This document shows, piece by piece, positions 9,785-52,341 of a DNA stretch of 64,000 bases. Where the stretch lies: positions 62,001 to 126,000 of the forward strand of contig NIVC01000957.1 in NCBI GenBank assembly GCA_002269645.1, given 5' to 3'. The stretch is from Macrostomum lignano (Eukaryota). The first letter of the stretch is position 1. Each line of letters begins with the position of its first letter. Made by a program: the position numbers and the translations under genes. Below the pieces are notes generated by a model. It was not told the origin of the DNA and ran no database searches. It saw only the letters and a program-made list of their open reading frames with translations.

Positions 9785-10072
9785 CCTCAATCCATTGTAG
9801 GCTCTGTGCGATCGATTTATATATTTAGCAGCGACCCTGCAGCTGAGACTGCGTACATTAAAAACAGAAAGCCAAGAATATTGGATGTACATCGGAAATG
9901 CACACCAGGACTAAAAACACTTATTATGCAAGCACTGGGCAGCAGGTGCCTACAATTCTCCCCAACCAGAGAGATCCCAGGGGATAAAAAAAACGAGCTC
10001 AATTACTCAGTTACTACCGGCCCAAACCCCAAAGCAATCAAAGCGGCCCGCCCACGCACAAAAACCCTAGGA

Positions 10073-13000: not shown

Positions 13001-14183
13001 TGACGCCCCAGTATCGTCAGGCCGTCGCCGTCCATAATGTGGAAGGTCGCGGTTGTTCTGGCAGATCCCACTTGGATGTCGGTAAATTTCGACAGATCGA
13101 CGGTACCCACAATCCTGAGAGGTGTCGGTACCCCGTAGGCGCGAACTTCGGCTCTTGTTGGGCGTGGGCTTGGCAGGCTGAGCGCTCTGAAGGTGCCGAG
13201 ACTCATGATACTGCAGCTGGCTCCGCTGTCAATCATCATGGGAAGCTGCCGGTTTGCCACCTGCACAGTCAGTGAGACGTCGGATGGGTATTTGTCGGGG
13301 TTGTACAGCGCGAACACATCCTCGATGACGGAGCCGTCGGCAGCTGTGAATACAGCATTGGTGCTGATTTGCTGCTGTGGGATCCGGCTGCTGTTTGACT
13401 GCCAAGGCTGACGGCAGGCAAGAGCGAGGTGGTTAGGCTTACCGCAGTTGTGGCAGATCTTGCCCTTGGCAGCGTCGCAGGTAGCGTGGCCTTTCTCGCC
13501 GCAGCGGTAGCAGGTGCGCTGCTGCTGGTCGCCGGGCCTGCTGGTCGTCTGAGCCGGGCCACGCCTGTTCGTTCTCACCTTGTCGCCCTTGGCAACGCTG
13601 GCCACGTGCGAGTCTGTCTTCTCCATCTCGATGGCTTGTTCCTCTGCAGCCTCGAATGCCCTCGCCTTTCGCAAGGCCTCTTCCAGGCTGATGTTCGCCT
13701 CCTGAAGCAGCCGCCTGCGCAGCTTGTCAGAGCTACAGGTTGCCACGAGCTGGTCTCTGATGAGCGAGTCCTTCAGCTGCTCGAAGTCGCACGGCTCTGC
13801 CGCAGTGCGCAGTCTGGCGTACCAGGACTCGATGGACTCTCCGGTGGCCTGGGTGCATAGGCGGAACTGATATCTGGCGAATACTATGTTCTTTCTTCCA
13901 TTGAAGAATGTCTTCAAAGCGTCCAGCGTCTGCTTGAGGGTGACTTGGCCGTCCTCTGTGGCCGCTGCAGGCTTGGCCTCCTCGCGGATGATGTCGGCGA
14001 TTTCCTTGCCTGCTGTGTAGCTGAGTAGTTTGCACTTTTTCTTCTCGTTGGTGATGCCTGATGCATCGATGAAGTCTTCAAAGCGGTCCGCCAATTGACT
14101 CCAGCGCTTGCCCGCGTTGTGTGGGTCTGCTGATACTGAGAATGGCTCAGGGGGGGGGGCAGTGAGAAAAAGTTGGCTGCCAT
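10073..14183 (-). pseudogene. Gypsy 1 gag-pol (zinc knuckles, protease, RT, RNase H, integrase) with frameshifts
   Basis: CYRCGEKGH and CHNCGKPNH knuckles, IDSGAS protease, AHDDVVV RT, VDASPIG RNase H, GMDFYGP/VTDNGPPF/NGATER integrase. Frameshifts at the G10 run 14150-14159 and near 10560, and a compensating pair around 11070-11140. Confidence 0.92.
10150..10322 (-). repeat. 12-bp tandem repeat encoding (PAGE/PAGQ)n in the integrase tail
   Basis: Repeated GGCAGGCTCTCC / GGCAGGTTGGCC units. Confidence 0.9.
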
Positions 14184-15605
14184 GATTTGTTTACCGCGCG
14201 GTAGGCGGCTTGCGACGCCACTGTAGAGAGCGAAGCCGAGAGAGAAAGTTATGTGTTGTGTGTAGCCGATAAAGCCTCAATCCATTGTAGGCTCTGTGCG
14301 ATCGATTTATATATTTAGCAGCGACCCTGCAGTTGAGACTGCGTACATTAAAAACAGAAAGCCAAGAATATTGGATGTACATCGGAAATGCACACCAGGA
14401 CTAAAAACACTTATTATGCAAGCACTGGGCAGCAGGTGCCTACAAAGAGTTGACCCCATCATACGGTGATCCCCTCAGACAATCCCTGGCATCCACCTGG
14501 TCAGTGTCGCAAATTCCTTCCGATCTTGTCCCGCTTTGGGACTGTTTTGTTCTGCATCACATTATTACCCTTTACAGTGACCACATTTAGACCATTTTGT
14601 TCAGGACACAATGCTACCGTTTCGTAAATATCGTACAGTATGTAGTGTAAGCATCTTTTGTGTAATTTCTGAATTCTATTAGTTAGTTAGCTTCTGTATT
14701 ATTGTTGATAATTATTGTATTTTGCTTTAATTTAGTCACGTTTTCGATGTACTTTTTCTTGTTAGTTAGTTTATTTTGCGTAAACAGGTTAGAAGTTAGA
14801 CGCCAATTCTGTGACTCAGCGGAGGGTTGAGTTTTTCTGCGAACCCCAGCTTTGCGCGGCCAGCCAATCAGAATCGGCCTGGACCCTGGCACGCGGCAAA
14901 ATCGCACTCGTGCAATTCAGCTTAGCGAGCGGCCGGCCAGACGACCACCACCCGGCTTGAGGGGGGGTTTTGAGGGTCTGACAGTGACTATATATGAAAG
15001 TGTGTTTGGCGGTCGGATCTCTTCTCTTCTCCCCGGCTTTGGTTTTGTTCCAGCTTCCCGGCCGCTTTGCCCTATTTTTGTGGTTCGCGCTTTGAGGCGC
15101 CTGAGTTCGTCACCCCGGTCCGTGTTTTGCTTCCCTGCCCGACCGCTTCAGTCTTATAGCGTAACGTCTACGGCAAATTTCTGTCTGAAGTCGTCGCTAT
15201 AAGCGCGGTTAGATAGAGACTGTCGGATTTGACCAAGTACGTGGCCTCGACCCAGAGAGCCTCAGTGTCACACTGAAGGGCAGCGCTGATAGAACTTAGT
15301 CAGTGCTCTGTTGAACGGTCAATTCGGCAGGGCTCTCGTTTGAGTGTAGGTTCTGGTTTAGGCCAGGTATTAGGAGTTTTTCTCCGTGGTCCCGTGTTCG
15401 GTTCCTCTTCTTCAGCTGAGATCCACTTGCCAATTGCATTATTAATTATTATTAATTGTTTTATCGTTATTATTGGTTCGTTATCATCAGTTCGAATTAT
15501 CTGCGCCGCGAATTACGTTAAGAATCTTGTAACTTTATTAAATCTAATTAAATCGTCGAGTAAATCAAATTTAGTCATTCTTACTAGGATTATCACTCTC
15601 TAAAT

Positions 15606-17986: not shown

Positions 17987-18171
17987 TGAAACGACAATTT
18001 ATACGGGTTTTTCCCATATTATCGTTTCCTTCTGCCAACAGTTCAGGAAGACAACGAACAATGGACCTGATGGTAACTTTCTCTGTGTGATCTCTAGAGT
18101 CACATTCTCAAACTTCAGGCGAGGATCTTTCCTCTTCAATCAGTATATTTTATAAGCTAGCACACTGTACG
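17987..18171 (+). repeat. Truncated copy of the L2 element that also sits in the capsid gene
   Basis: About 185 bp nearly identical to 29853-30037, starting at the same TGAAACGAC boundary. Confidence 0.85.
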
Positions 18172-18482
18172 TGTCCTACTCGCTTAAAAAACGTCATCCA
18201 TCCTTAATCCATCCATACTATCAGAGCATAATCCACTAACATCCACCCAGAAACAATCTGAAAATAATCTGTATTCTTCTCCACAAATTCAATTCGCAAT
18301 TCGCAACGCATCCCAAAGACTTTAAATCCCCAAACCCTGGGTCCTTACCCTTTGAAAAAATCTAAATTCTCAATAAAAATGTTTCCAGTTGTCTCTCCAG
18401 GTTCTTATTATACTCAGCCTCATCCATTGTACAAATCCAAGTACCGATGCTATCTTGCGCTACGGTAAAGCAATTAGCAATT

Positions 18483-18650
18483 GCGGTACAGCGGATGCGG
18501 TAAAGCGGATGCGGTAAAGCGGATGCAGTGCGCACTGTGGCAAAGCGGATTGTGCCTAGCACAATTCTTTTAAAGATATATATATGCTGCGGATGGACCA
18601 TAGACAAAAAGCTCAAAGCGGCGGCAGAGGCGGCGGTGCCTAGCACAATC
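18483..18650 (+). repeat. Left subterminal motif array of the YR element
   Basis: GCGGTA(A/C)AGCGGAT x3 in tandem (18483-18524), GTGGCAAAGCGGAT (18537-18550), palindrome ATTGTGC-CTA-GCACAAT (18549-18565) and GTGCCTAGCACAAT (18636-18649). Confidence 0.85.
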
Positions 18651-18810
18651 TTACTAGAGATATATATATTAACCCGGTAGCTATAGTATACGGCTGGGCT
18701 GCTCATTCATTTTTTCTGCATTATTGCCCACGCGCGCGTCCGACCGTTGTTAGCTGCAGCGAGCATCCAGCAGCCAGCGAGCAGCTGATTACGATAATAA
18801 AATATAAAAG

Positions 18811-19936
18811 ATGCAAAGTCCTCCATGGCCCGGCGATAGCCAATACGCAACCGCGGACGAGATGGCGGCCGTCCTCCTGGAAGCCTGCGAGCAGGTTGAC
18901 GCTGCTGAAGCCGCGGCCGCCGCCGCCGCCGCGGCCGCGGCCCCATCGACTGTTCCAAAGCGGCAAGAAGACGCGGAGCGGGCTGCACTAGAGGCCGACC
19001 TCTTCACGCTGGAGGCGGCGGATGAGCAGGCTGATTGCGTCATCACTGGGGTCTTCGTACCAGACAGCGACGAAGACGACGAGGCAAGTGGTCGCCTGCC
19101 ATTATTCAAGACTGAACAGCAGAGTCAGCAGCAGCATCATCAGGAGACAGCGGCTGCAGTCGCTGCAAAGCCGGAACTAAAACGACAGCCGAGAATCGGG
19201 TCAGCTGGCATCAAGCCGGCGATAACGAGTCGCTGCTTCGTATCCCGAAGTGGCACGGCCGCGTCGCTAAGCGCCGCTAAGCAGCAACAAGGGCCGACAC
19301 CGCCAAAGCGCCATTGTCAACGCCCGATAACGGCGGCGAACGCGCTGCCATCGTCGCCCTGCAGTCGCAGCAGTTCGATCCTATCGCCAGGTAGGAGTCG
19401 TTGAATGCTGCTGCTCAGTTGCTGAGCATTCGTTGTTGACCATCGATCCTTACACTTTTAGTTCATAGCTCATTACCCATATTGTGAAATTATTTGTCAT
19501 TGTTCACAACAACCACCACCAATCGTCCACTTTGACGACAGGCTGTTCTATCCCGTCGGACACTCGGTCTTCGCAGCCGCCGCCGCCGCCGCCGCCGCCG
19601 CCGCCTCCGCCGCCACCTTATTACTGCGGCGGATATACCGACGAATGGAGCGCCGCGGCCGCCTCCTACGAGACGGCTGCTGCTCACCAGCATCATCAGC
19701 AGCCGCAGCCGACACGGGACACCACGTCCAGGCTGCTCGTGCCTCGCATTCTGCTGCACCCCGAGGATGCCGTAGACGCCTCCGTTGCAGGCAGCAATGG
19801 ACAGCTGGCGAATCGGCGGGCCTACCGCGGCATGTCTGTGCTCAGGATAGCCTACGTGAAGCAACCTGGCGCGCTCAAGATGATGTTAATGTCAGCCTGG
19901 AGTGAATGGGCGACTCAACTGGCCATCAGTGAGTAG
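18811..19936 (+). CDS. Unknown low-complexity (Ala/Gln/Pro-rich) protein, first gene of the YR element, probably spliced (~18811-19390 + ~19542-19936)
   Basis: ATG in an A-rich context. Candidate CAG|GTAGGA donor near 19391 and GACAG acceptor near 19541. No recognisable domain. Confidence 0.45.
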
Positions 19937-20290
19937 CGTGGGGTTGTTGCCCTTTCCTATTTATCTACTTACTTTATTAAGCATTGCTGTTCTTTTCTTT
20001 TTATATCATTTCTGTGCAGCTCCTATGCGCGATCGACAGCGCTGATTTGCCAAACTATTGCCATAGACTATATGAATATCACAATTAATGATATATCAAT
20101 GCCATTTATTGAATTGCCACGACTGCAACACTGCCATAATCGTATAATCCCTCTTCCCCCACAATCCTCATCTGTCGCGCGCCTCCGCCCCCTCTCTCTC
20201 TCTCTGCATCATCCCATTTCTGAATAATATTGCGCCGTCTTCTTCTTCTGCATCTAATTTCTCAACTCGACGATCAACACACAAAAAACA

Positions 20291-21578
20291 ATGTCAAAAA
20301 ATAGGCGTCACTAAGAATGAGTTCGAGCCATCCAAGACGCACATTGTCGATCCATATGCGCCCCTGACCGACGATGTTAGTCGGGAGACGTCAAGCATTC
20401 ACGCATTTGTCCGCACCGCCGTCCTCCACACTAATTGCGACTTGGTCGGGCAGCTGCGTCCGATTTTCGCGTCAGGCCGCGACGCGGACACCTTTGCTGT
20501 GCGCCGCTGGACGCAAGTCGAGATCAGGAGCGTCCGCAGCGTCGAAGCCGAGCTGCGCCGGATAACTGCGCTTGACCCGGTATGCTGCACAATTAATATC
20601 GATGACAGCTGCTTGTCGCGCACCATCGTACTCTATCGTTGGGCGATGTCGTATCCGGTCGAGGCGGTGCAGCCGGATCTTGACGACCCCGTGCTAAACG
20701 CGGGCAATCCGATGTTGACAAAGCAGTCTTTAGACTACTTCAACAACATTCAACTTCTGCGTCGGATGAGGGCAGAGGCGCTCTCGGGGTTCGTCAGGCT
20801 CGGCGGCCAGCAGCAGAAGGCACTGTGCGGTGTCTGCGAGCGGCCGCCAGTGTCGTTCCGTAGTAGCGCCGCCGCCACTTTCGCCGCCTGTTCCGGTCCT
20901 TCTTCTTCGTCGGAGGACGCGTGTCGCCGCCGCAGCAACGGCGGCAGCCAGAGGGTGTCGCAGCAGCAGCCGCAGCCGCCACCGCCGCTGCCAGACGAAC
21001 TTGTGGTGACGCACCTGGGCAGCGGTCTGTGCGACGTACAGATAGCCGTGTGCCGCGCCATGCAGAGGGAGATGCCGCCGCCCACAATATATTTGTGGGG
21101 GCCTTCCGGAGTTGGCAAGACGGCCATGGTGCACCTGCACTTTGGCAGGGAGCCTGTGTTCGTGCCGGACTTGACAACAAGTTTTCCTTTCGACGGGCTG
21201 CGCTTTAACTTGCATAAGTGCATTTTTGTCGATGAATTCGATGCCAGCCGTCCAATTCCGGGTCAACTGCTGCTACTGTTCAACCGTGATAAGTTCACGA
21301 TCAATGAGAAATATCAAAGCCACAAAAAAGAGCCATGGCCACACGCCATTGTTGTGGCGGGCCACGCGGCCCCAGGGCAGATCAGTCGGGACTTCTTGCG
21401 CAGGATGACTGCAGTCGTGCACATCCCGCATAATCTGTTCGACTGCGACGGGTGCGACGCCAGTCAAGGTCGCAGCGGCAGAGGACGCCAAGATGCGGCG
21501 TCGCAGGCGGCGAAGAAAAATGTGCAGCAGCAGCAGCAGCAGCAGATGCCGCCGCCGCCACCGCCACCGCCGCAGTAG
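20291..21578 (+). CDS. CRESS-DNA-virus-like Rep: degenerate HUH-like N-terminus plus SF3 helicase
   Basis: TIYLWGPSGVGKT (Walker A), FPFDG, CIFVDEFD (Walker B), TINEKY, IVVAGH at the motif C position. The frame is open from 20148. The ATG at 20291 enters it if one A is removed from the A run at 20296-20301 (MSKIGVTKNEF...). Confidence 0.78.
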
Positions 21579-22902
21579 CAGGAGCGGCTGTTTGCCGACG
21601 ATGCCGCCGCCGTCGCCGAAGAAGAAGAAGAAGAAGAACGCGAAGCAGCCTACTATTGTTGAATAGAAACACTGATTGATTGATTGATTGATGGATGGAT
21701 GGATGGATGGAGGACATTATCGTTATTGTGCCGGCGGCGGAGGTGGGCCAGTCGTTAGGGGCTGCAGTACTGCTGCAACAATTTAGTGAGCTGCTGCAGC
21801 ACGTCAGATGCACATTGCCCACACTTCCCTTTGTTTCTTCTCTATCTTCTATCCCTTCTATCCTCTTTCCCCTTCTCTCTCTCTCCCTCTCTCTTTGGCC
21901 CTTACTTCCCCTACTTTGTTGAGGCGATGCGATGCAGGTACCGAGGTTGTGCTGCAGGCAGAAAGGTACACCTGTTCTCGTGTTCCAGTGTTTGTGTGTG
22001 TTTGTTTTTCAGTTTGTTTCGTCGTCGTTTGGAAATCGACGTGATCTCAGCCTGGCTGGCTGAATGCAACTGCAGTGTTGGTTTTGTTTCTAAGGAGTTC
22101 GATGTGCATTTTTTGTCGCTTCTGTGCGCCAGATGGGGCCGCCTAAGCAACCGTTATTTAAATATTTCGCCGCTTCTTCGCTATTGTATACCAAACCAAA
22201 CCAAACAGCTTTTTTTCCATCTCGATCAGCTGCTTCCTATTGAGCAACTTAGTAATGGTGCTGCATCCGTAATTTATATATCTTTAGTCGAAAACATTTT
22301 CTATCTACAGGGCAAATGCGCTTTTTTGGCAACATATTTGGGCCACAATATTCTCTCATTGATATTTACTCTATAATATTATGTCTGTCTACTATATTAG
22401 GGGGGGGGGTAGATATATATATATTCATCAATACGTCTATATCGCTTTGGTGCTTTTTATTGAACAGCAGAAATAGTTGCGTGTATTATTTTCTTTTGCC
22501 TTGCATAATATGCAGTGCCCTATGACCATTCGGCTTTACAGAGGGCGGGGTAGGAAAATCGGGGTGGCTGGCTAAAATTGCTTTTTGGATAGAGGGAGAA
22601 AGAGAGTGTGGGGCACTGATGCATGCGGGGGTGGGGGCTGGGTTAAGGAACACAGTCAAAAAAATCGATAGTCAACATATACAACCATAGACAACAAAAA
22701 TCCATAGACAACAGCAGAGTACATGCCCGGTGAGATTAGTCTATGAGGAGGGGGGATAGCCGGGATTTGGATGGCTAACTCTTCGCTTCTTTGTATAAAG
22801 TCAGTCAACAGTCTATGGCTCTTCCCTTCCATTTTTCACTGTAAACAATTGCAAAGAGTGATCAGGTCCAAAATCCGTTTTCTTTATTTATTCCATCGCC
22901 TG

Positions 22903-25737
22903 ATGATGTCCTTCGGAAAGTACCTCCGGCTCTTGTTCGGCTACGACGAGGAAGAGGCCCAAGACGATAGTTCAAGTAGCAGCGAATTTATGATTTCAGC
23001 ATCGATTGGAGGTGAGGCGAAACTGCGTCATCCGATCCGATATTTAAGACTCTATTCACTACATTGATTGATTGTTTGATTGATTGATTGATGGGTTGCC
23101 ATGCCATCTAACACCCATTGTACACAGTAGCAGCGGCCGCGGACAGTCCAGCGCTGGCCAGCAGCGGCGATGGCGACGGCCCTTTGACTTGCCTGCTGGA
23201 CAGCAGCCCGGCAGCGGCAGCGGCAAGTTCGGCGGCGTCGGCCAGAGGCGCGGAAGCGGCAGCGGCGGGTTCAGCGACAGTCAGAGGCACGAGTGCCGCA
23301 GCAACCGATCGCAACAAAAAATATGCCAAGCAGTGCCCTGTTCCGGGCTGCACCGCCCAGATGCGTGGAGACACGCTGAAGAGGCATTTTGCTGCGCGGC
23401 ATAAAGACTGGATCAAGCAACAGCATATCGACAGTGCCAACGAGGACGGCTGGTCTTTGGAAAGGCGTACGTCCTGGCTTTGGCGACTTTCCACCCTGCG
23501 ACCTGCGGCAGACTCTGTGGCTGTTGAGCAACAGGCAGCAAATCGTGCTCGCCGACGGGAACAGTACTGCGCCGACTGCAAGTGCTTTTATAGAGATACG
23601 ACAAAGCACGCAGCAAAGCACGCTAAAAAGCCAGCAGGTATGAGTCGCTGTCAATCTAAAATTGGAGCACATTGCTTTCAAAAGCTCACCCGTGACTTCA
23701 TTTTCGCACACCATCCATCCATAACTGCATACAGCCGATTCCTTGGCGCCTCTTGCCAAAGGCAGCAGCAGCAGCAGCCGCGACTCGGCGGCCTTGGCGG
23801 CGGATGCCAGCTGCGACTCGGCGGCGGATGCCAGCTGCGACTCGGCGGCGAATGCCAGCTGCGACTCGACGGCCTCGGCGGCGAATGCCAGCTGCGACTC
23901 GACGGCCTCGGCGGCGAATGCCAGCTGCGACTCGGCGGCCTCGGCGGCGAATGCCAGCTGCGACTCGGCGGCCTCGGCGGCGAATGCCAGCTGCGACTCG
24001 GCGGCCTCGGCGGCGAATGCCAGCTGCGACTCGGCGGCCTCGGCGGCGAATGCCAGCTGCGACTCGGCGGCCTCGGCGGCCTCGGCGGCGAATGCCAGCC
24101 GCGACTCGGCGGCCGTGAAGGCAGCGATCGCGGCGGGGGATGCTCTGGCCGTCATCAAGTTGCGCAGCAATTCCGAACTTTTGCGACAGTATCCCATCGA
24201 CGCACCGCTGCTGGCTCAGCTGAAGGTTCTGCAAGAGCTCCATTGGGATGACTCGACTGGCGTCCGCAATCCCGAGTACGACGGCCACACTGAAGCGCTG
24301 ATTGACACCTTGTCACTCGTATTGTCCGTTTGTTCAAAGATGGCAGAGGTGGCTGGTGTTGGCCTCCACGAGCGGGACTTGGTGTTCTGTCTGGCCGACC
24401 CGTCAGCAGCCGTCGCAGAGATTCGCGCCACCAGCAAGAGTTCTGGCACGGTTAGAAATCGGGCACAGGCCCTGATTCGGTGTACCCAGTACATGTTGGC
24501 ATACATCGTGCACGACCGACAACATCTGCAGTCGCTAATCGAACGCCTCGCGCTGCCGCCCGAGATTGCCGCCGACTTTGACAGCCGTTGCAACCTGCTA
24601 CAGAAGCGGTTGAAAACAGTCAGGCAGCGGCACGACTTTGAACGCCGGCTGGACGCTCCGTTGCACCACGACAAGAAGCAATGCAGACTGCTGACCCCCG
24701 TTGAGTGGCGCAAAATTCTCGACGACTACTCCGAGCTGGTCTCCGCCGGCCCCGACGTGCCCGCCGGACGTGGCTGCGCCGCCGGCTTCACTGCGATGCG
24801 CAACCGCTTCGCTCTTCACGCGACCGCGATGCATCCGCTGCGCGTTCGGCCGTGGCGCGGTCTCCGCGTAGCGCACATCCGGCCGGGTAGCGCCTGTCGC
24901 CGAGACAACGCGGAAAATGGCTATTCGACCATCCGGCTTCCCGGTCGCGAGGTGAGCCACAAGAAGATCGCCTCGGTCGGCTGCAGCGTCCTCACACTGC
25001 CGACGTCGTTCATCGACCTGCTGCTAGCCTGGCGCAGCAGTTGCATCGCCGCAGGCGACTTGCCCGCAGTGTCTAGCTCGCCGTTCGTCCTGTGCACTCT
25101 GCGAGGCGAGAAGCTGTCCGTCTCGACGTTTAGCCACTCTGTTGCAGCCTACGCCCAGCACCTGCTAGGTCGAGCCGGAGTCTGCCCGACCATCTTTCGC
25201 AGCTCAAAGCAGGACATAGCGGCGGCTGGCCGACCAGAGATGGCCGATCAGGTGGCCGCGCTTTTCGAGAATTCCGTGCCTATGATGATGAGGCACTACG
25301 CGACGAATGCCATGCTGGTTACCAGGACTAATGTTCAGGCCACAGTCGACCAGCTTGTCGCGCGGCGAGCCGCCTCCTCCTCGACGACTGCCAAGGCCTC
25401 CTCCGCCTCCACCAGCAAAACAACAGCAGCAGCAGCAGCAGCAGTCGTGCCAGCAGCCAAAGCTACACGCAGGTGCACCGCCGTCACCAATGCCGCATCC
25501 GGTCCAGCCGCCAGGACAGCAACTACGCCGACTGAAGTCTGCTTCGTGCCGTCGTTCTCGCAGCCCGTAACGCACGGTGAAGTACAGCTGATGCGATGCA
25601 AATCAAAGCGCAAAGCGGCCGCCGAAGCCAGGCTATCGTTGATGCAGGAGCAGCAGCAGAAGAAGAAAAAGAAGTCGAGTGCGGCGACGTCTGGCCCAGC
25701 CAGATGCACCGGATGTAAGCGGGGGGGGGCTAATTGA
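22903..25737 (+). CDS. Zinc-finger + tyrosine recombinase, join(22903..23011,23128..23637,23735..25737)
   Basis: Two phase-1 GT-AG introns join the ORFs in frame. CPVPGC...LKRHFAARH is C2H2-like. YR catalytic set: HPLRVRP (R), SHKKI (K), CPTIFRS (HxxR box), FENS (H/W position), MMRHYA (Tyr nucleophile). Confidence 0.82.
23780..24110 (+). repeat. 33-bp in-frame tandem repeat encoding ANASCDSAASA in the YR protein linker
   Basis: About eight GCGAATGCCAGCTGCGACTCGGCGGCCTCGGCG units plus shorter 24-bp variants. Confidence 0.92.
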
Positions 25738-25856
25738 CAGAGTGACGCAATAGCAGCAGCGCAATAGCAGAAGCAACAGACCTCTGTGTCGAAATGCGAC
25801 AGGTAGAAAAATTTCAATCAATCAGTTGTCAATTATTTATATCTAGGGCGCGCTTG

Positions 25857-25893
25857 AAATTGTGCCTGGCACCGGAGGTGCCAAGCACAATTT
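25857..25893. other. 17-bp-stem hairpin downstream of the YR stop
   Basis: AAATTGTGCCTGGCACC-GGA-GGTGCCAAGCACAATTT, 16 of 17 pairs perfect, built from the same motif found at the element ends. Confidence 0.85.
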
Positions 25894-26241
25894 CTTGCGC
25901 GACCCTTTGTCATAATAATTGTTTTGCCGCCGCCTATATATAACTATATAGCCATAGTTGATGCTGCAAGCGCGCTACCTGGATTAGCTAAATTGCTGCA
26001 AATTGTTATAGTTAATGCAATAATGTAAACTGAAAACTGAATCCTGTAATGCTTGTCTAATATATATATATTGTGCCACTTTTATTATGCCCATGCTCTG
26101 TTCTCCGTTTTCTCCGCTTTATTTTAACAACAATTTGATAGATTAATTAGGCGATAGGCATGTCTCGTATACTACACAGGCTAGCCAGATATAGCAACAA
26201 ATGAAACTTCCCCATAGCTATATATATCTACTTTTATAGAC

Positions 26242-26490
26242 ATTGTGCTAGGCACCAACAGTGAATTGTGCTACCTAACTTACTAGCTGCCAAATTTCTG
26301 CCACGTATATATTTACAATTCCTTCTATAGTTGCCGTTTTTATCCGCTTTGCCGCAGTTCTGCGCACTTCTATCTCCGCTTTGCCGCACTCATATGTTAC
26401 CAATGTATAGCGCTTTGCCGCAGTTCTGCGCACTTCTATCTCCGCTTTGCCGCACTCATATGTTACCAATGTATAGCGCTTTGCCGCAGT
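26242..26490 (-). repeat. Right subterminal motif array of the YR element, including a 66-bp tandem repeat
   Basis: ATTGTGCTAGGCACC (26242-26256). 66-bp unit starting at 26346, 26412 and 26478 with repeated (T/A)CCGCTTTGCCGC, the reverse complement of the left-end motif. Confidence 0.85.
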
Positions 26491-27526
26491 TATCCGGCCT
26501 GTTTACCGCCGTGAAAGCCAAATGATATGGCAAACTTGAATGCAGCGAGTATATGAGAAAATATTGGCCCGGCGTTGCCGGCGTTGATATCAATGTTCCT
26601 AATATTAATCTAGCTTTCCAAAGACACTGGTTTCATAAGTATGGAGTAACCTACGTAAAAGATTACGACAGCTACTATAACTTTGCAGAAATCATTAGAC
26701 AATTGCGTTCAAAATCTCAAGTCGAAACTTAGTAGTTGTCATGAGGGAAGTTCTGGGACAAAAGAGAATAAATCCCCCACAGATCAACATCTAGTAAAAT
26801 CTATCTATACATAATGCTCTTACATTTAAAATTAGCTATCCCAATGCAATGCTTACAACCAATCATCTAAGGGGATAACATCAGTCTACCACCCTCCCCT
26901 CCCTAGGACAGCCAAAAAAATCAACATAATCTAAGGGCGAAAGGTAGCGGTATTTTCACTTAAGTTACAGGACTTATAATTAATAGTATGCAGCCAAAAA
27001 AACTGAAAGGCCAAAATCCTTTTCATTCTGGCCTTCACTCGAGGCCAAAATCCTTTTCATTTTGGCCTTCACCCGATGCCAAAATCGTTTGCATTCTGGC
27101 CTTGCGCAATGCCGAAATCCTTTGCATTCTAGCCTTCCCTCGAGACGGAATTCTTTCTCGGCTGGGCTCAGTTAAAGTGAAAATCTCTCTCTCCCCCCCA
27201 CACGCACTCTCTCTACCCCCATATCTTTCAAAAGTCTTCCCAATTCCTTGTTAGGAGCGCACAAAATAAACTCTGCTCCCGAGCCTCCGCCCTCTCTCCT
27301 CGTGCACCAGCCCTCTCTCCCTATGCACCCGCCCTCGGCGTCCATTCCCAACCCCAACTTTGTCATACCAAAAATAACCGCCTTGACTAATTTCCTAGCA
27401 ATCGACTCACGAAATCCGCTCGAAGATTGTATGTACAGCTTAGAACTTTCTGGAATTTTCAACTGCTAGCTGTATTTAAAGCCACACTACTAGAAGCTAA
27501 GTCAAGCACAATATAATTTTTAATGC

Positions 27527-28138
27527 ATGGCGTCTAAGGCCTCCGATATAGTTGAAAAATTAAAAGACATGTCGAAGAAAGATTCGCATTCGTTAGCGAT
27601 TGTAATTAACAATTTAGAGGACCGTCAGCGTACTGAGATCCTCCAAACTCTTCAACAAATTGACGAAAATACCTCAGAAAAGAAGAAGGAAAAAGCCGAA
27701 AAAGAGACTAGAAGCAAAGCAGAAGCCGAGGGTCGCTTCATTGGGCGGCTTAAAGCCAAGCTGGAAACGTTTGAGACGATCGTGGTAAAGACGAGATTTA
27801 CGAATGCGCGGGAACTATTAATGAAACCGCTTGACGATGACAATGATGACGATCTGAAGAATTACGTTCACAAGCTCGATATCTTCATTGGCGAGCTTGA
27901 GATTCTGAAATGCCTAGCCAATCGAGCGCAGGGCAATGCTGTGCTCCTGTCAGCAACACGACATGGCACGATTGCGAAGGCCGCCAGCAAGCTCAACATC
28001 AACGTGAAGAAGGCGGAAAGGGTCGCCAACTATGCCAAGTTTACACGACTCTATCCAAGCCTAGTATTTACTGGCTATAGTATGGATACCATACTAAACC
28101 GAAAGGCGGTCATTGAACGCGCAGCTCTAGAAGACTAG
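27527..28138 (+). CDS. Unknown Polinton-associated helical protein (family X, copy 1)
   Basis: 203-aa ORF. The C-terminal YAKFTRLYPSLVFTGYSMDTILNRKAVIERA resembles the C-termini of 36801-37430 and 53221-53855. Confidence 0.6.
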   Translation: MASKASDIVEKLKDMSKKDSHSLAIVINNLEDRQRTEILQTLQQIDENTSEKKKEKAEKETRSKAEAEGRFIGRLKAKLETFETIVVKTRFTNARELLMKPLDDDNDDDLKNYVHKLDIFIGELEILKCLANRAQGNAVLLSATRHGTIAKAASKLNINVKKAERVANYAKFTRLYPSLVFTGYSMDTILNRKAVIERAALED

Positions 28139-28688
28139 AACATGAGAAGCGCGATGGAGCTGGAGCCGGAAGATGTCCAATTTGACTATGAAGAAGAGGA
28201 AGAGGAGATCCTCTATAATGCATACGACGAATTTCTTGAGTGAATGCTTTTATTTTGATTTCGCGCCATTTCCTGTCTTAACAGGAATTCGCACGAATTC
28301 AACTGTGCAAAATAGCATTTTTCTGAGAAAGACTAGTGCGCAGTTGGATTCGCGCCATTTACTGTCTTTAAAGGACTTCGCACGAATTCAACTGTGCAAA
28401 AAAGCTTTTTTCTGAGAAAGACTAGTGACAGACTTGTGTTTGTTATGTGCGAATACTTTCGAAGTTAACCAACTTTTGACATAACAAAACAATAGACTGA
28501 GCACAGACTATCTTTTTGTGTCCGATTTTTTTGTGTTTTCAATCCTTTCACTAAATACTGGTTAGAAAAAAAATAATGCTTGGTCAGTCCAAAAAGCGTG
28601 AGGTTACCTACTAATAAAAAATATGACTAGAAAAAATATCCTAAAAATTCGAAATAGAACTGAAATAAAATATTGAGTTATTTTAACA

Positions 28689-29590
28689 TCACATTCTCTC
28701 AATGATCAACGTCAGTACAAACTCTTCACCGTTGAAATCAACACCCATCCCATCTTCAGTCTCAAACTGTAGCACAATCTCGTGAATCTCCTTATTACTC
28801 AATACAACTCTTTTCACTGGATTTGGTTTCTCTACCAGCATCTGTCCTTCAGCAACAGAGTTGGAGATATTGTACAAAATATTAGTTCGCTTTCCCTTAA
28901 ATACCCAATCAAGACTAAGATTACTTCTGATAAGAATATTTAAACTCTTTACAATATCTGCAATATTGGGTGCTAAGAACAAACCGCTTACACTTTCCCG
29001 GGCCATTCTAACAGTCCCCGACGTTTGAGTGGCGGGTGGGAGATGTGGGATACGGATCTCAGGTGGGAGATGGGGCTGGGTCCGCGCCGCGGATTCTACC
29101 TTATAAACTTTTTTCTCGAATCCCAATTCCCTATACCAAGTGTCATCTTTAAACTCAACCTCCGCATCTTTGTGAACTTGCATGACCACTCTCATTACAG
29201 TGAGGTCATAGGTTAGTTTTACAGGGAACATTTTTTATCTGGCTTACTCGCATCAGGTGTCTCGAAATGGCCTCTTTTAGTAAAGACGTTTTCTAGAAAG
29301 TAATTGTAGGCACTTTGCGTGCTAACATGGAATACCACAGGGTCTGCTGCTGCACCTTTCCATTTGTAATAAAACTTATTATTTGCTGCCGTCACATTGG
29401 GAACGTTTGACCAACCAGTGAAGTCGTTAAGATGGACATGGTAATTAGCACCTGGATCTAGGCGAATCGCCCGCTCTAATTTTTCAACAAATATCCCGTT
29501 TGAGTCATTAATTCGCCCGGTTATTGTAATAGGAATGCTCTCCTTAGAGTGTGAAACAATGTTGTTTAGTCTTTCAGCAATCGCTTCCAT
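28689..29590 (-). pseudogene. Polinton minor capsid (penton) protein, frameshifted near 29225
   Basis: N-terminal half ...AIRLDPGANYHVHLNDFTGWSNVPNVTAANNKFYY. C-terminal ...IVLQFETEDGMGVDFNGEEFVLTLIIE, a typical Polinton penton ending. Directly downstream of the major capsid gene. Confidence 0.78.
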
Positions 29591-29612
29591 TTTTTTCACC
29601 CACAAAAAATAT

Positions 29613-31351
29613 TTAAACTTTACTGGATGAGTTGTTGATCATGTTAAGCTTCACCTTCCTCTCAAATGCATAGATAATGTACAGGTCCACGTGTGTTGCG
29701 GCAGTCCTCTCAATGTTAGTCACGATATTCACAGGGCTGTTATCAGTAGGCATTTGTCTGGCAGACACATCAGCACCAAACATCGGATATAGAGTTCCAT
29801 ATTGAAGAGCAGTGATAGCAATTCCATTGTTCTCTTTCACAGCCAAGTCGACTGAAACGACAATTTATATGGGTTTTTCCCATATTATCGTTTCCTTCTG
29901 TAAACAGTTCAGGAAGACAACGAACAATGGACCTCGATGGTAACTTTCTCTGTGTGATCTCTAGAGTCACATTCTCAAACTTCAGGCGAGGATCTTTCCT
30001 CTTCAATTAGTATATTTTATAAGCTAGCACACTGTACGCGAGCAACGAGGAATGGGAGCAGTAGGGGGAGAGAGTGGGATTTCGAGGCCCAATAGGCAGT
30101 GTCGGTCAGAGGTTGTGCATGCATCACGCGAGGGTCGCATGGCTGGGCTTCTTGCTTGCCGATCATCAGGACTATTTTTAGGCATGCAGATCTTGTGCAT
30201 CTGGGGAGTTGCTGCCAAGGCTGGATGCTTGTTCACGCATCACGCGCGTGTCGGCTGATTTCTCCCATCCTCTTGCTAACGGCGCCTTCGTTTCACTTCA
30301 CGACCAACTCGCTGTAAAATTTGCTAATCTTGTTCTGACTGAAATATCCATTTTGTGGCAGTGCAGGGTAAAGATTATCACTGATTTCATGCTGAATGGA
30401 CCGAACGTCTCCATGCATGTAGCGTATAATGCTATTTGGGTTTCTCATGTTAATAATAATATACCTTGGATTGCTGCATGATCCCTCTTTAATGCAGATG
30501 TTTGTTCTAGTTTCGTTTCGCTCATCTCTACACATGTAGGCTGTGTATGCAACATCAATGTCCTTCTCTATTGCCTTGAGATAATCCGCTTTTAGTGCGG
30601 TCTTTGGCTCAATGACTTCCAAATACAGCTCGATTCCGGTTAGCTTCACCTCCATCCTTGTGTGGTCCGCCCCAGTCCACAACACTCTACTGCGATCATC
30701 TCTAGTCAGTCTAAATGTGTAGCTAAAGTTACTAGTCAGTCGATTAAATGTATTACAGAATCCACTCATGAATCTCAATGGTACAAATACATCAACAGAC
30801 CGATACAGCGGGTTCTTAGCAGCATCATCAGCACCTTGCAATGCATAGTTGTATCTCTTCTTCCTATTTTTATAGCCACTGTCATTGATATCTCCTTCTT
30901 TTTCATCTGCAATAAAACCCGCACCACTTCCCAACTGAATAAAATCAGGATTCTCGATCAAACAATGAGCGTCATAGACAATTCCAAAGTTGGCGATTCG
31001 CTCCAACTCTGTGCTCCCATTCGATACACTAAACTCCTTGAACATGTACGCCCAAAAGTTACTGATCAGAGCCACATCCGCATCATGCTTGTCAACGTTA
31101 GCACGAGCCGCATCCGCACCACCCTTTGTCTTGAATTGAAATGTCATATGGAAGCCGCTCTTAAGACTGTGCACACTAACCAAAGACGAACATCCATTGT
31201 ATGTAAATGTCAGTGTTTGACCAGGACCAAGATTAGTTTCATTCTGATTTTCCTGACTGGGAACTCTTACCTGAGTCGCTTTGATTGTGCTATCATCACT
31301 CAAAATAGGCTTGTTAATTTTGTAGAAAACTGGTGTCAGCGGGTCGTTCAT
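29613..31351 (-). pseudogene. Polinton major capsid protein (double jelly-roll), interrupted by a 448-bp insertion
   Basis: Removing 29853-30300 with one CGAC copy joins ...KFYSELV-DLAVKENNGIAITALQYGTLYPMFGADVS...DLYIIYAFERKV in frame. Size, gene position and the LYPxFxxDVS-type C-terminus fit a Polinton MCP. Confidence 0.8.
29853..30300. mobile_element. 448-bp TG...CA insertion (family L2; solo-LTR- or MITE-like) in the MCP gene
   Basis: Flanked by a CGAC duplication (29849-29852, 30301-30304). Starts TGAAACGA and has the inverted TCGTTTCA at 30288-30295. Confidence 0.82.
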
Positions 31352-31381
31352 TTTTTAACTAAAAATAAAATAAAATAAGAA

Positions 31382-32113
31382 ATGAAGCGAAAAAGTACAC
31401 AGCAGATATCTGAATTGGAGAAGCTAGCACAAGCAGAGAAACGAGTTACCGGGCTAATAAATAAGGAGCAACAATCCTACAATGAGTTTGTCCAGGCAGC
31501 CACAGAGTTTCATAAGCCTGGGTATGGAGAAGCTAAGAAAAATATTGATCAAGTCAAAGAAACTATCGACGACATACAGGAAACCCAGGTGAAAAAGGCT
31601 TTGGGAAAAATTCCAGAAGCACCACAGATACAGCCGCAACCACAGACACAACCGCAACCACAAAAACCACAACCACAACAATCACAACCACAACCACAAC
31701 TAAAAGTGACAGATAACATTTTTGGACCAGTAGAGCGTGTAGAACATGATGGGAAATATGTATTTGGAATAAGTATGTGGAGAAAAAATATTTATAATGA
31801 ACCAGTGGAATATTATATCGACATAAATAAGAAACATATTTCGGTTGTCAAAGGCTCGGAAACTAAGAGCATTCCTTTCACAGAAACGTTACTGAATTTT
31901 ATGACCAAGAACCAAGAGAGAATCTTGGACAAACAGCTAAAGAACTATAGAGATCTAGTGACTTTCGCTATTGCTAGAGATATAGAAATACTAAAGGCCC
32001 TAGAAGTCCTGAAACTTATGTATGATAACGGCGTCAACCTGACTAAATTCAAAAAGTACAAGCACTTTAAACAATGGTTTGATTTGCCAGATCAGGCGGA
32101 AGTCATAAAATAA
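31382..32113 (+). CDS. Unknown Polinton protein with a Gln/Pro-rich linker, divergent from MCP
   Basis: 243-aa ORF with an A-rich ATG context inside the structural module. Confidence 0.55.
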   Translation: MKRKSTQQISELEKLAQAEKRVTGLINKEQQSYNEFVQAATEFHKPGYGEAKKNIDQVKETIDDIQETQVKKALGKIPEAPQIQPQPQTQPQPQKPQPQQSQPQPQLKVTDNIFGPVERVEHDGKYVFGISMWRKNIYNEPVEYYIDINKKHISVVKGSETKSIPFTETLLNFMTKNQERILDKQLKNYRDLVTFAIARDIEILKALEVLKLMYDNGVNLTKFKKYKHFKQWFDLPDQAEVIK

Positions 32114-32627
32114 CTAGAACAACAACAACAACAGCAACAACAACAACCACAACCACAGCAGCAACATTCCACAGAAGAACAAGTACTCAGTCAACTCGAG
32201 CAGTTAGACCCTTTGAAAGTAGCTGAATATAAGAAACAAACCCAACAGACTGGCAACACTTAGAACAACACTCTCCAGATCGAATGAACAGAATCAAGCA
32301 AAGAGTTTTCACACCTCAACAAAGACAGGCACCACATGACAGTTCCATCTCTGAAAGTGAGCAGTCTTTTGCATCACCTCCCAGCAGCTACAAGCCCAAC
32401 CAACTCCACAACCCCAAGACCAACCGCCCTCAACTGGAAAAGGAATTTCTGAAATCTACAAGCGAGTAGCGGTTCTTCTAGGAGCGGCAAAGACCGGAAT
32501 GAAAGACGAGAATTGAGAAGAATTTGTCAACATCCTGGACAAAATGCTTGAGAGAAAATACATCGATAAGAGGGCGAGAGAGCTTCTGCTTCCGCGGTTC
32601 AACAAAAAATAATTTATTTCAAGTAAA

Positions 32628-33868
32628 ATGCCGATTATTTTCGAAAAAGACATTGGCAAATACTATGACAAAGAAGTGTCACGATGTTGGCGTAGCGGCT
32701 AACTATGGCTATGACCCTTAAAAGGGCCGTTTTGACGAGAGTTGTAGCGAGTCGTAGTCTCAAAATAATTTGAAGTCAACTTATTGTAAAGCGGATTTTG
32801 TAGCGGAGCACTTGGCGATAAAGGCAGGAACTGCCGTAGTTGTTTTTATTGTTAATATCAATATTAGGCTTGGTTAGGACTGTCAATGCACAGACTATGG
32901 CTTTCTGGGCACTGGCGGCGGCAACAACGGGTTGAATATAATTTGGATATGAAGTCAAGTGACAGGCGGATGATGCAATGACGACGTAACGTGGTGAGCA
33001 GTGGCAATGAGCACAGTGGAGGCAGTGAGTAGCAGTGGCGAGAGTGGCGTCAGCCGTGGCGTGAGACAGTCAAGTAAGCGTGTGAGTAGGCTGGCCCAGA
33101 CGGAGGGGCCGTGGCGAGAAATAAGGAGGCTCGAGACAGCCAGACAGAGAGAACGAGGCAGGCACAAGGCCAAGGACCAGAACAGACAGGAACAGACAAG
33201 AACCGATAAGTGAGGAGTGCCCGCCGCCAGGCGGGGGGTTAATAAAGGAGGGCAGAGGGGGTAGCGCGAAGCACGAGCGGTTTTCATTGGCTGGCGAGAG
33301 AACTTAAAATTATTGATCGTGCCAATTTTATACGGTCGCGAGAGAGGATAGCAAAATATACAGTAAATTACAAATTGCCACAAAATCGTTGGGCACTACT
33401 ACAAGTAAACGTCGCAATAAACAAATGGAAAAGTTTAGTTGAAACGGTGAAACTGAAGGGTTGAAACTATAGAGAAACAGCAGTCCAACGGCCCTTTTCG
33501 GGGCCACCTCAAACTGGCAACGTCACAAGGAACTTAATCTTATTAAACGCGGATCTGGACTTTTCCCTGCAGGCTACTATCCAAGAAAAGAACGCTCTGG
33601 GAATGGCCTTGCCGATTTGATCGCTCAGGGGGCCAAGATTTTTAAGGTCATTGGAGAGAACAAAGAGAACATCAAGAACTTTGCCGAAGCGGCTGGCAGT
33701 GTAGCCACAGCAGCCAAAAAGATAAAGGATACTGTAACACCTAAACAAGAGATTCAACCGCTGGCCCCGCTGGCTCCACTGGCCCCAAATCCAGACAGTG
33801 TGGACCCTGCAGTCTATGAGAAGATGAGAGCTAGCATTAAAAAAGGAAGTGGTTTCAAATTTGACTAA
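32628..33868 (+). pseudogene. Small core/cement-like virion protein split by an L1 insertion (32628..32676 + 33528..33868)
   Basis: Excision gives MPIIFEKDIGKYYDKEEELNLIKRGSGLF...RSGNGLADLIAQG... in frame. The GSG/GNG motifs resemble adenain-type cleavage sites of Polinton core proteins. Confidence 0.55.
32677..33527 (-). mobile_element. Second, diverged copy of solo-LTR family L1 (851 bp)
   Basis: Reverse complement begins TGTGACGTTGCCAGTT and ends GTGACA, colinear with 8930-9784. No clear TSD. Confidence 0.85.
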
Positions 33869-33917
33869 AGGGTACTTTCCGAGGGTACAAGAAATGTAAA
33901 GGTATAAGACTAGACCC

Positions 33918-34055
33918 AAAATGACACATCCAAGTCCCAAAATGACACATCTAAGTCCCAAAATGACACATCTAAGTCCTGAAACGACACAATTAAGTCC
34001 CGAAACGACACAATTAAGTCCCAAAATGACACATCCAAGTCCCAAAATGACACAT
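33918..34055 (+). repeat. 21-bp minisatellite (~6.5 units) upstream of the ATPase
   Basis: AAAATGACACATCCAAGTCCC and GAAACGACACAATTAAGTCCC variants. Confidence 0.92.
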
Positions 34056-34101
34056 CTTCTAAATGATTTATTATTTAAAAAAAAATTCATCATAGAAAAA
34101 A

Positions 34102-34902
34102 ATGGACTTTTCAAGCGACTTCAATCCTCACTGGACGCGTAATCAGGTTAAGTTTTCTCATCACGAGTCAATCCCGAGTAACTTCAGATGCATTGTTGTT
34201 GGTTCATCAGGTTCAGGTAAAACATTCAGAGTCTTTAACATGCTTCTTAGACCTGGCTTTATCCACTATGACACTCTGCACATCTACTCTCCCACACTGT
34301 ATCAAGATGAGTATAAAATGCTGATTTCTGGATTGCAAAACAAACTGAACAAAGAGGACATTATTCAATGTTTTAATAACCAACAAAACCTTCCCAGTAA
34401 CCCAGAAAATGTTGCTGCCGAATATGCAAAGCACCTCAAAGACAATGAAAAATGGCAGAACATTAAAGTGTTCACCTATGGAGATCCACAGGTTGATCCA
34501 AAGACCAAACTTCTACCCCATCCAGATGAGCTAGAAAAGGGGAGAAAGCATTTAATCGTCTTTGATGATTGTATGACAGGCCCACAGAAGCAGATAGAAA
34601 ACTATTTTACAAGAGGACGACATAACAATTGTAATGTAATTTACATTGCACAGAATTGGTTCGAGCTCCCGAACAAAACAATTCGTGGGAACTGCAATCT
34701 GATTCTCCTGTTTCCAACCATTCCTCAGGACAGAATAAAAAGATTTTACAATGAGGTCATTGCGCCTGCCTATTTTATAAATCCAACAAAAAACTCAAAC
34801 AGAAAGATTTCACAGGAGGAATTCGTTAACCTCTGCTACGAAAAGTGGAACCAGCCTTATCAGTTTGTCATGATCAACAAGGAAAAAAAGATTCTGATTT
34901 AA
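34102..34902 (+). CDS. A32/FtsK-like DNA packaging ATPase (Polinton)
   Basis: CIVVGSSGSGKT (Walker A), LIVFDDC (Walker B), YFTRGRHNNCNVIYIAQNWF signature. Intact, 266 aa. Confidence 0.93.
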   Translation: MDFSSDFNPHWTRNQVKFSHHESIPSNFRCIVVGSSGSGKTFRVFNMLLRPGFIHYDTLHIYSPTLYQDEYKMLISGLQNKLNKEDIIQCFNNQQNLPSNPENVAAEYAKHLKDNEKWQNIKVFTYGDPQVDPKTKLLPHPDELEKGRKHLIVFDDCMTGPQKQIENYFTRGRHNNCNVIYIAQNWFELPNKTIRGNCNLILLFPTIPQDRIKRFYNEVIAPAYFINPTKNSNRKISQEEFVNLCYEKWNQPYQFVMINKEKKILI

Positions 34903-35717: not shown

Positions 35718-36266
35718 TTTTGTAATTTTTTTATTTTTTCTAGGGAAAAACTGGCCCAACAAAATTGATTATACGATCAGTCTGAACCTAAAATACCGAC
35801 AGCACCAAACCCAATGGCACCGAATTCGAACACACAAAAGTAGAAGGCATGAGGGGGCTTTTGGGACAAAATTTTTCACATCCTTCATAATCCCATTAAA
35901 TCCATCCATATTATCCCTGACAGAATCAGAGCATAACAGGTGTCCTACTTGCTCCGAAAACTTCGAACATAATCCCATTAAATTCATCCATATTATTCCT
36001 GAATCAGAGCATAACAGGTGTCGCACTCGCTCACAAAACGTCATCCATAATCCTCCTAACCTATCCTCCTTCCTCCACGACAGAATCAGAGCATAACAGG
36101 TGTCCTACATAATCCACTGACATCCACCCATAGCAGCTTTGAAACAATCAGAAAATAATCTGCATTCTTCTCCCCACATTCAATTCGCAACGTGCTACCA
36201 GATCCCAAAGACTTTAAATTATCAACGCAGGGTCCTTACTCTTTGAAAAAAAAATTTTCTCTAAAA

Positions 36267-38182: not shown

Positions 38183-38212
38183 TATTTTATTTAAAATTTT
38201 CTTTTTGAAAAA

Positions 38213-52068: not shown

Positions 52069-52341
52069 CTAAGTTTCGACTTGAGATTTTGAACGCAATT
52101 GTCTAATGATTTCTGCAAAGTTATAGTAGCTGTCGTAATCTTTTACGTAGGTTACTCCATACTTATGAAACCAGTGTCTTTGGAAAGCTAGATTAATATT
52201 AGGAACATTGATATCAACGCCGGCAACGCCGGGCCAATATTTTCTCATATACTCGCTGCATTCAAGTTTGCATCGGTACTTGGATTTGTACAATGGATGA
52301 GGCTGAGTATAATAAGAACCTGGAGAGACAACTGGAAACAT
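52069..52341 (-). CDS. Subterminal small ORF, copy C (intact empty site for the YR element)
   Basis: 90 aa. Contains GTACCGATGCAAACTTG on the minus strand at ~52264-52280. Confidence 0.55.
   Translation of the reverse strand: MFPVVSPGSYYTQPHPLYKSKYRCKLECSEYMRKYWPGVAGVDINVPNINLAFQRHWFHKYGVTYVKDYDSYYNFAEIIRQLRSKSQVET

Follow-up and report, generated by a model that had tools for sequence, protein, structure and literature searches.

What kind of mobile element has inserted an 8081-bp, gene-bearing segment into a dispersed repeat of Macrostomum lignano, and by which enzyme was it moved? The segment lies in a 64,000-nucleotide stretch of contig NIVC01000957.1 (NCBI GenBank assembly GCA_002269645.1, positions 62,001 to 126,000 of the forward strand), which is hereafter called the window, is numbered from its first letter, and consists around the segment of repeat-rich eukaryotic DNA of ~40% GC. 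We find the segment to be a discrete, recently inserted element without a classical target-site duplication (TSD). We tentatively read it as a Crypton-type element in mechanism, autonomous, moved by a tyrosine recombinase (YR) and provided with an accessory ATPase, and rate this reading a little below an even chance. Cryptons, the YR DNA transposons of eukaryotes, are poorly understood. The enzymatic assignments of both proteins and the linkage of the two genes are tentative.

The insertion itself is defined by its empty sites. The left flank (..AAGTACCGATGC) stops at 18450 and the right flank (AAACTTGAATGC..) begins at 26532, and these two halves are joined without interruption in three paralogs of the flanking repeat within the window. 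In the closest of these, the flanking segments 18171-18457 and 26530-27406 are adjacent at 52548-51396 on the minus strand with 97-99% identity; two older paralogs (~36298-36337 and, on the minus strand, ~54162) also run uninterrupted across the site. The three-way alignment places the break between ..CCGATGC and AAACTTG... Because three uninterrupted repeat copies are contiguous across the site, the boundaries are exact, as a preliminary description of this DNA had claimed from the same comparison, and the concordance of the three empty sites rules out an assembly artefact. The dinucleotide GC ends both the left flank and the element and is the sole exact sequence common to them. The overlap, which had also been described as GC only, was confirmed at the empty sites as a 2-bp ambiguity in the placement of the ends, and the sequence allows it to be taken either for microhomology or for a target duplication of 2 bp. 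The element has a GC content of 55-64% (58% as one figure), versus ~40% in the flanks, and no second copy of any part of it was found in the window at the DNA or translated level. The target is one member of a dispersed repeat family; its members measure ~0.65-1.2 kb, contain short tandem repeats and are 74-99% identical, and the window has at least four of them.

Both ends of the element are organized around a 12-bp motif, GCGG[T/C]AAAGCGG, for which 1.15 matches are expected in 64 kb; nine of the 12 matches in the window lie at the element ends. They form two arrays in inverted orientation, four copies on the left and five on the right, at roughly symmetric distances from the tips (32-34 bp versus 42-44 bp). 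The extreme tips are not inverted repeats of each other, so that the earlier statement that terminal inverted repeats (TIRs) are absent holds for the tips and fails for the subterminal regions. Inward of the arrays, both ends have a palindromic TTGTGCYWRGCAC motif (TTGTGC-N3-GCACAA) with a TATA-like run behind it, in two copies on the left and in one inverted copy on the right. Two inverted copies of this palindrome also make up a strong hairpin ~110 bp past the stop codon of the last gene. The 47-nt modules on the left are possibly promoter or protein-binding modules. The element therefore has degenerate, modular inverted ends of ~200-300 bp. If joined, they would form a large dyad centered on the junction, an arrangement that would fit the synapse of a recombinase or of a transposase alike.

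All long open frames are on the plus strand, and minus-strand open reading frames (ORFs) only overlap them, so the one-strand gene layout in the preliminary description is borne out. So is its finding that reverse transcriptase (RT), DDE transposase and capsid genes are lacking: no ORF of the element has a Pfam match to any of these domains. The first gene encodes a low-complexity protein, whose two frames would be fused in frame by removal of a predicted 79-nt GT..AG intron (19390-19468). It is followed by the gene for a P-loop ATPase and, after a spacer of ~1.4 kb, by a 3' gene in two predicted exons, the first with two zinc-finger motifs (CX4CX11HX4H at 23334-23402 and CX2CX10HX3H at 23568-23621) and the second with a recombinase-like frame. 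With a strong donor, GTATGAGT, and with 23734 as its acceptor, the predicted intron between them would put the two exons in frame; an in-frame ATG is absent upstream of the fingers. Neither the first gene nor the zinc-finger exon matched Pfam, PHROGs, NCBIfam or PDB sequences, and an exact look-up of the first ORF returned no record. In the ATPase frame and in the recombinase-like frame, GC content by codon position follows the order GC3 > GC1 > GC2, from which we conclude that both are real coding sequence. The main frames are free of in-frame stops, and at each of the two frame offsets there is a canonical GT..AG interval that matches it. On this reading of the sequence there are no definite coding breaks, and either interval, if it is not an intron, would count as one frameshift. 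A further splice junction, 19928/20305, is possible.

The recombinase-like exon opens with a tandem repeat that is open in three forward frames, and the reading frame there consequently rests only on the flanking sequence. Beyond it lie an all-helical domain, a candidate YR catalytic domain and a low-complexity tail. An exhaustive phmmer search of 1.8e9 representative proteins returned a single relative, P0001 (25% identity, E=2.6e-4), which is 235 residues long as called, within a contig open frame of 316 codons. It comes from JGI 3300040801, contig Ga0450804_2871083 (1482 bp, 41.6% GC), with no other gene aboard. The candidate Arg-I, Lys, Arg-II and Tyr are present in both proteins and invariant between them, and the two have in common the Arg in HP.R..PWR, a His-Lys pair in a predicted beta-hairpin and a Ser at Tyr-8. 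Arg-II and Tyr are 33 residues apart, compared with 31 in lambda Int and 32 in both XerD and Cre, and Lys and Arg-II are 79 residues apart, compared with 76, 75 and 91, respectively.

Catalytic-domain alignments of established YRs were compared with the alignment of the element protein and P0001 using hhalign. The comparators were natural sequences: lambda Int, eight lambda-like phage integrases, Cre, XerD and eight Xer-like phage integrases; the Repbase Crypton proteins (supplements of PMC3212892) were left out because they are consensus sequences. The profile of lambda-like integrases, Cre and XerD gave a score of 20.6 (P=0.013) against a null of 12.2±2.3, with one of 160 column shuffles reaching the real score. 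A score of 17.1 (P=0.058) was obtained with the Xer-like profile, and one of 18.8, reached by four of 400 shuffles, with all 19 sequences. The runs agreed in register: the invariant Tyr fell on the nucleophile in every run; in the Xer-like run Arg-II fell on Arg-II and the Ser at Tyr-8 on the Ser of GHS, and in the global alignment Arg-I fell on Arg-I. In a low-confidence model, the secondary structure of the candidate domain (helix, three strands, helices) follows the expected order. The motifs lie in colinear order, Arg-II and Tyr are separated by 33 residues, and for a pre-specified hypothesis the hhalign scores reach p≈0.01 against shuffles; on these grounds a YR catalytic domain is the best available, albeit weak, reading of the 3' gene. 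Of the spliced zinc-finger/YR protein proposed earlier, the splice model on the plus strand is plausible, with its 96-nt GT..AG interval, and the YR identity is weakly supported.

The second protein to be classified is the ATPase, whose first in-frame ATG is at 20646. Walker A and Walker B are separated by ~45 residues and Walker B and the sensor-like strand by ~40. A C-terminal lid domain would not fit into the sequence. Alignment from Walker A to beyond Walker B was obtained with a single family, PF00910 (RNA_helicase), the superfamily 3 (SF3) family of picorna-like 2C and CRESS Rep (E=0.047, 14.6 bits with a cut-off of 21.5, profile positions 1-90 of 105); better E-values belong to short matches over Walker A only (AFG1, AAA, AAA_16, RuvB, Hda, Orc1/Cdc6). 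Because of the motif spacing and the lack of space for an AAA+ lid, SF3 is favored, and "P-loop ATPase, SF3-like" is a defensible label. The preliminary description had called this protein a Rep-like SF3 helicase. The P-loop ATPase and its SF3-like spacing stand, and the Rep part falls: no Pfam family matched the 190 residues upstream of the P-loop at E≤10, no HUH, Rep or Helitron_like_N match was found anywhere in the element at the same threshold, and no ordered motif I / HUH / YxxK pattern was seen by eye in its frames. A CRESS-like Rep is unsupported since the HUH domain was not found, and membership among CRESS-type Reps was rejected for the same reason. Comparison with PDB sequences gave nothing informative, and tblastn against plasmids gave noise only.

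Past P0001, word-indexed protein searches with the YR region, the ATPase ORF and a profile of the YR with P0001 returned nothing. IMG/VR, JGI metagenome contigs and GTDB genomes were scanned with the YR, the ATPase, P0001 and the YR alignment, as well as with the capsid-like ORF and packaging ATPase that neighbor the element, and no relative was confirmed. With a single relative among 1.8 billion representatives, both proteins are close to being orphans by sequence; they consequently point to a protein family that is wholly missed by standard annotation.

We hypothesize that the ends of the element are joined, presumably in a circular intermediate, and that the zinc-finger-fused, divergent YR-like protein would recombine them with an end-like target, so that no classical target duplication would arise; the inverted 12-bp motif arrays may serve as binding sites through which both ends are brought together. 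The junction of the element, GC followed by TATCTTG, and the target, GC/AAACTTG, are alike at seven of nine positions (GCwAwCTTG), a match whose chance by a binomial estimate is ~1e-3 before and ~1e-2 after the choice of window is allowed for. Near-identity of terminus and target is known from active Cryptons of Chlamydomonas, with terminus CACCG and target CAYCG (PMC9977147). The P-loop ATPase would be an accessory, either an SF3-type replicative helicase acting on an extrachromosomal form or an ATPase of recombination or target selection, and the sequence does not discriminate between these roles.

Several results weigh against this Crypton-type reading. Exact identity of terminus and target is limited to the 2-bp GC, as opposed to a direct repeat of 4-6 bp in described Cryptons (PMC3212892). 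Two of the six YR signature positions carry other residues: Ile in the element and Tyr in P0001 replace the His of HxxR, and the third His/Trp, which lies at Tyr-9 in lambda Int, XerD and Cre, is Asn in the element and Thr in P0001. The assignment made in the preliminary description gained no support from a direct profile check, as the protein of the recombinase-like exon did not match Phage_integrase even at E≤10; DUF3504 and DUF3435, the other YR models, were likewise unmatched, as were all of Pfam, PHROGs, NCBIfam and the PDB chains, and tblastn of the YR domain found no match in 50,697 phage records at E≤10. Full-length hhalign against full-length integrases produced only a spurious 41-column match. 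The AlphaFold2 model of the recombinase-like protein, built from the two-row alignment, has a predicted local distance difference test (pLDDT) score of 43 and is unusable, and Foldseek with this model gave helical-repeat noise (E>0.2), with XerH at rank 35 and not significant. In the ATPase, the motif-C position is His, not Asn, the PF00910 score is under the Pfam threshold, and the AlphaFold2 model (pLDDT 32) is again unusable. Finally, the element is a single copy, and a relative carrying both genes is absent from the protein, IMG/VR, JGI metagenome and GTDB collections.

Two rival explanations, each of which we consider unlikely, draw on the ends and on the surroundings. Subterminal arrays of a short inverted motif are typical of DDE transposons, and shifting the right boundary 4 bp inward gives the tips the look of an imperfect TATC(A)TT inverted repeat; the YR evidence, moreover, reaches only p≈0.01 with two signature residues missing. 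The element could on these grounds be a cut-and-paste transposon with an unrecognized transposase, a serious rival in which the resemblance to a YR would be fortuitous, the GC (or TGC/TGGC) a short TSD and the arrays transposase-binding sites like those of CACTA, hAT and Mutator elements. Such an account leaves unexplained the invariant Arg...Arg...33 residues...Tyr pattern common with P0001, its 3-bp duplication requires an extra base, and DDE, RNase-H-like, HUH and other transposase families were undetected in any frame. The second is a capsid-less derivative or satellite of the polinton-like virus (PLV) or virophage lineage that has kept a module of YR and superfamily 3 helicase (S3H)-type ATPase and is packaged by a helper, such as the neighboring polinton-like element or a giant virus, in the manner of transpovirons and P4-type satellites. 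PLVs and virophages are the one eukaryotic group known to combine S3H helicases with divergent Cre-like YRs, which standard profiles fail to detect (PMC12220804, PMC4642659); because of this combination, a PLV derivative is a serious rival or a possible source. Polinton-like genes lie 0.9-11 kb to the right of the element, and the repeat in which the element sits is also present inside the polinton-like region. Set against this, the empty-site copies show that the 8-kb segment was inserted alone, its GC content is 58% whereas that of the capsid region is 38-48%, and neither its YR and ATPase nor the neighboring capsid-like ORF and packaging ATPase have similarity to any IMG/VR contig. The S3H of PLVs is usually fused to a primase or polymerase, neither of which is detectable in the element ATPase. 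No double jelly-roll (DJR) capsid, penton or packaging ATPase lies inside the element, and membership among PLVs or virophages proper was rejected.

More doubtful than either is a capsid-less, plasmid-like integrative replicon, which would enter the chromosome through the divergent zinc-finger-fused YR and multiply as an episome by means of its own SF3-type helicase; it would then represent a class of eukaryotic mobile element not described before. By analogy, and with the same low probability, it might be for eukaryotes what integrative plasmids and satellites are for bacteria and archaea, with a possible evolutionary link to the PLV module. The preliminary description had proposed an integrative eukaryotic element of this sort; its discrete insertion without a classical TSD is upheld, and its CRESS-like Rep is not, as no HUH domain was found. 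It is very improbable that the element is of the rolling-circle HUH Rep type, whether of CRESS-virus descent or akin to Helitrons or Replitrons, with the ATPase as its Rep-helicase. The insertion has neither a clear TSD nor TIRs, and the SF3-like spacing, the sub-threshold PF00910 match and the strong hairpin would suit such an element; yet the element matches no Rep, HUH or Helitron_like_N family at E≤10, the real Helitron of the window is detected through Helitron_like_N at E=1e-47, the frames of the element lack the ordered HUH pattern, and Replitron transposases are without a helicase (PMC10288648). Helitrons and Replitrons proper are ruled out by the lack of HUH, long terminal repeat (LTR) and DIRS / Ngaro / PAT elements by the lack of an RT inside the element, and Starships by the absence of DUF3435 and the wrong size.

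Returning to the Crypton-type reading, the element resembles Cryptons in the absence of RT and DDE enzymes, of a classical TSD and of inverted repeats at the tips, and in a terminus that resembles its target. The putative YR would be its sole recombination enzyme, no RT or DDE family having been detected. DUF3504 of CryptonA and GCR1_C of CryptonF are absent, and CryptonS, for which there is no Pfam model, lies outside this comparison. TATGG, the terminus found most often in CryptonS, lies in the right end and is not repeated at the left junction. Features that set the element apart from Cryptons are the inverted subterminal arrays, the fusion to zinc fingers, the gene for a P-loop ATPase and the substitution of the His of HxxR and of the third His/Trp. 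Accessory genes described in Cryptons are a C48 peptidase in CryptonS and CryptonF and Fanzor in some (PMC3212892, PMC3627910), and a helicase is mentioned for none of them in PMC3212892. Should the YR assignment be correct, the zinc-finger fusion, the arrays and the SF3-like ATPase would mark the element as a new variant among YR transposons. Active Cryptons gain copies, although excision is expected from their model (PMC9977147). A replicative helicase encoded by a YR element, if true, would readily explain this gain and would link transposons, plasmids and the YR-S3H module of PLVs.

The preliminary description recognized no described family with this pair of genes. A full-text literature search found no described capsid-less eukaryotic element with a YR and a helicase; YR and S3H are known together in PLVs and virophages, and those carry capsid genes (PMC12220804, PMC4642659). 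They pair a very divergent Cre-like YR with an SF3 helicase, to which the two genes of the element would correspond on our reading, and they integrate without a TSD, presumably via a circular form (PMC12220804). They differ from it in being 14-40 kb long and in always encoding the DJR capsid, penton and packaging ATPase, and no sequence relationship between them and the element was found. P4-type satellites are a prokaryotic analogue in that they pair a YR integrase with their own replicative primase/helicase; we know of no YR in transpovirons. Other prokaryotic integrative replicons, such as tycheposons and archaeal integrative plasmids, are compact and combine a YR integrase with their own primase/helicase (10.1101/2020.12.28.424599; PMC8371274), but unlike the element they use tRNA genes or att sites with long identical cores, and the likeness is one of analogy, no homology having been found; this analogy underlies the integrative-plasmid idea of the preliminary description. 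Transpovirons resemble the element in being capsid-less and ~7 kb long, with a helicase, a zinc-finger protein and inverted repeats at the ends (PMC3671162, PMC5499653); they are linear, in contrast, with long true TIRs and a superfamily-1 helicase fused to an inactivated polymerase (PMC5499653).

Table 1. Positions of the element, its parts, its target repeat and neighboring genes in the 64-kb window
Feature	Position	Strand	Basis or remark
Whole inserted element	18451..26531	+	Empty-site alignments with three paralogs; GC contrast with flanks
Left subterminal array	18483..18548	+	Motif count; 4 motif copies, three as a 14-bp tandem
Two 47-nt modules, TTGTGCCTAGCACAA then TATATATA-like run	18539..18669	+	Upstream of first ORF
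Gene 1, low complexity (poly-Ala/Gln/Pro)	18811..19936	+	ORF 18811-19404 and open frame 19469-19936
P-loop ATPase gene	20148..21578	+	476-codon open frame, GC3 0.72
Walker A, GPSGVGKT	21099-21122	+	ATPase gene
Walker B, IFVDEFD	21222-21242	+	ATPase gene
Sensor-like strand, IVVAGHAAP	21348-21374	+	ATPase gene
FLRRM	21393-21407	+	ATPase gene
AT-richer spacer, 32-53% GC	21650..23110	.	No coding periodicity; flanked by (GATT)n/(GATG)n microsatellites
Zinc-finger exon, two C2H2-like motifs	23112..23638	+	Sequence reading
Predicted intron, 96 nt (GTATGAGT...ACAG)	23639..23734	+	Sequence read by eye
Recombinase-like exon	23735..25737	+	670-codon frame ending at 25737
11-aa (33-bp) tandem repeat, ~10 units	23775-24113	+	88-99% identical; start of recombinase-like exon
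All-helical N-domain	24130-24756	+	Recombinase-like exon
Candidate YR catalytic domain	24757-25422	+	Followed by low-complexity tail
Candidate Arg-I in HPLRVRPWR	24832-24858	+	
Candidate Lys in SHKK	24955-24966	+	
Candidate Arg-II in IFRSS	25192-25206	+	
Candidate Tyr in RHY	25291-25299	+	
Hairpin or cruciform	25846..25904	.	28-nt arms, 86% complementary, 3-nt loop
Right-end module, TTGTGC..GCACAA and TATA-like run	26222..26257	-	Inverted relative to left copies
Right subterminal array, 5 copies of GCGGCAAAGCG[G/C]	26344..26487	-	Inside perfect 66-bp x 2.2 tandem
Best empty-site paralog, ..CCGATGC / AAACTTG..	52225..52325 (join at 52263-52271)	-	Sequence alignment
Target repeat copies	17987-18457 + 26530-27406; 51396-52548(-); 35838-36482; 54046-54690(-); 29853-30038		
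DJR capsid-like ORF	30293-31351	-	PF21738, E=2e-4
Pox_A32-type packaging ATPase	34102-34902	+	E=1e-6
Parvovirus-type phospholipase A2 (PLA2)-like ORF	37712-38182	-	E=1e-13; just beyond 27407-37789

The polinton-like genes belong to a 10.4-kb segment (27407-37789) that begins 0.9 kb to the right of the element, has the look of a polinton/PLV-like remnant, and is absent from the inverted paralogous copy at 52548-48486. It is bracketed by a direct repeat of ~118 nt with 76% identity (27307-27424 / 37790-37907). No polymerase or integrase was recognized in it, and no relatives of it were found in IMG/VR.

The remainder of the window is rich in other elements, and no RNA families were found in it with Rfam. 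The Helitron (340-4930) encodes, besides the Helitron_like_N domain whose E-value is given above, a PIF1 helicase (E=1e-62) and Pif1_2B/UvrD_C domains; these are spread over three plus-strand ORFs, which implies at least two frame changes or introns. A Gypsy-type LTR retrotransposon of ~60% GC at 9770-14445 appears young, with LTRs of 171-186 bp that are 97-99% identical and an uninterrupted 1188-codon gag-pol on the minus strand (zf-CCHC, protease, RT, RNase H, integrase). A 3-kb inverted duplication (37790-40761 / 48486-51496, 94-99% identical) encloses a Gypsy-type set of RT, RNase H and rve (41352-45623), and the minus strand carries a further rve fragment at 50107-50880. We considered whether this inverted-arm RT element (38230-51084) is a DIRS element and rejected the idea, as it is Gypsy-type with an rve integrase and no YR. 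Another repeat family of ~870 bp is represented by 8930-9765 and, inverted with 73% identity, by 32706-33527(-). Short tandem arrays are located at 55666-55890 (25 bp x ~8), 33891-34078 (21 bp x ~8) and 49562-49697 (perfect 68 bp x 2).

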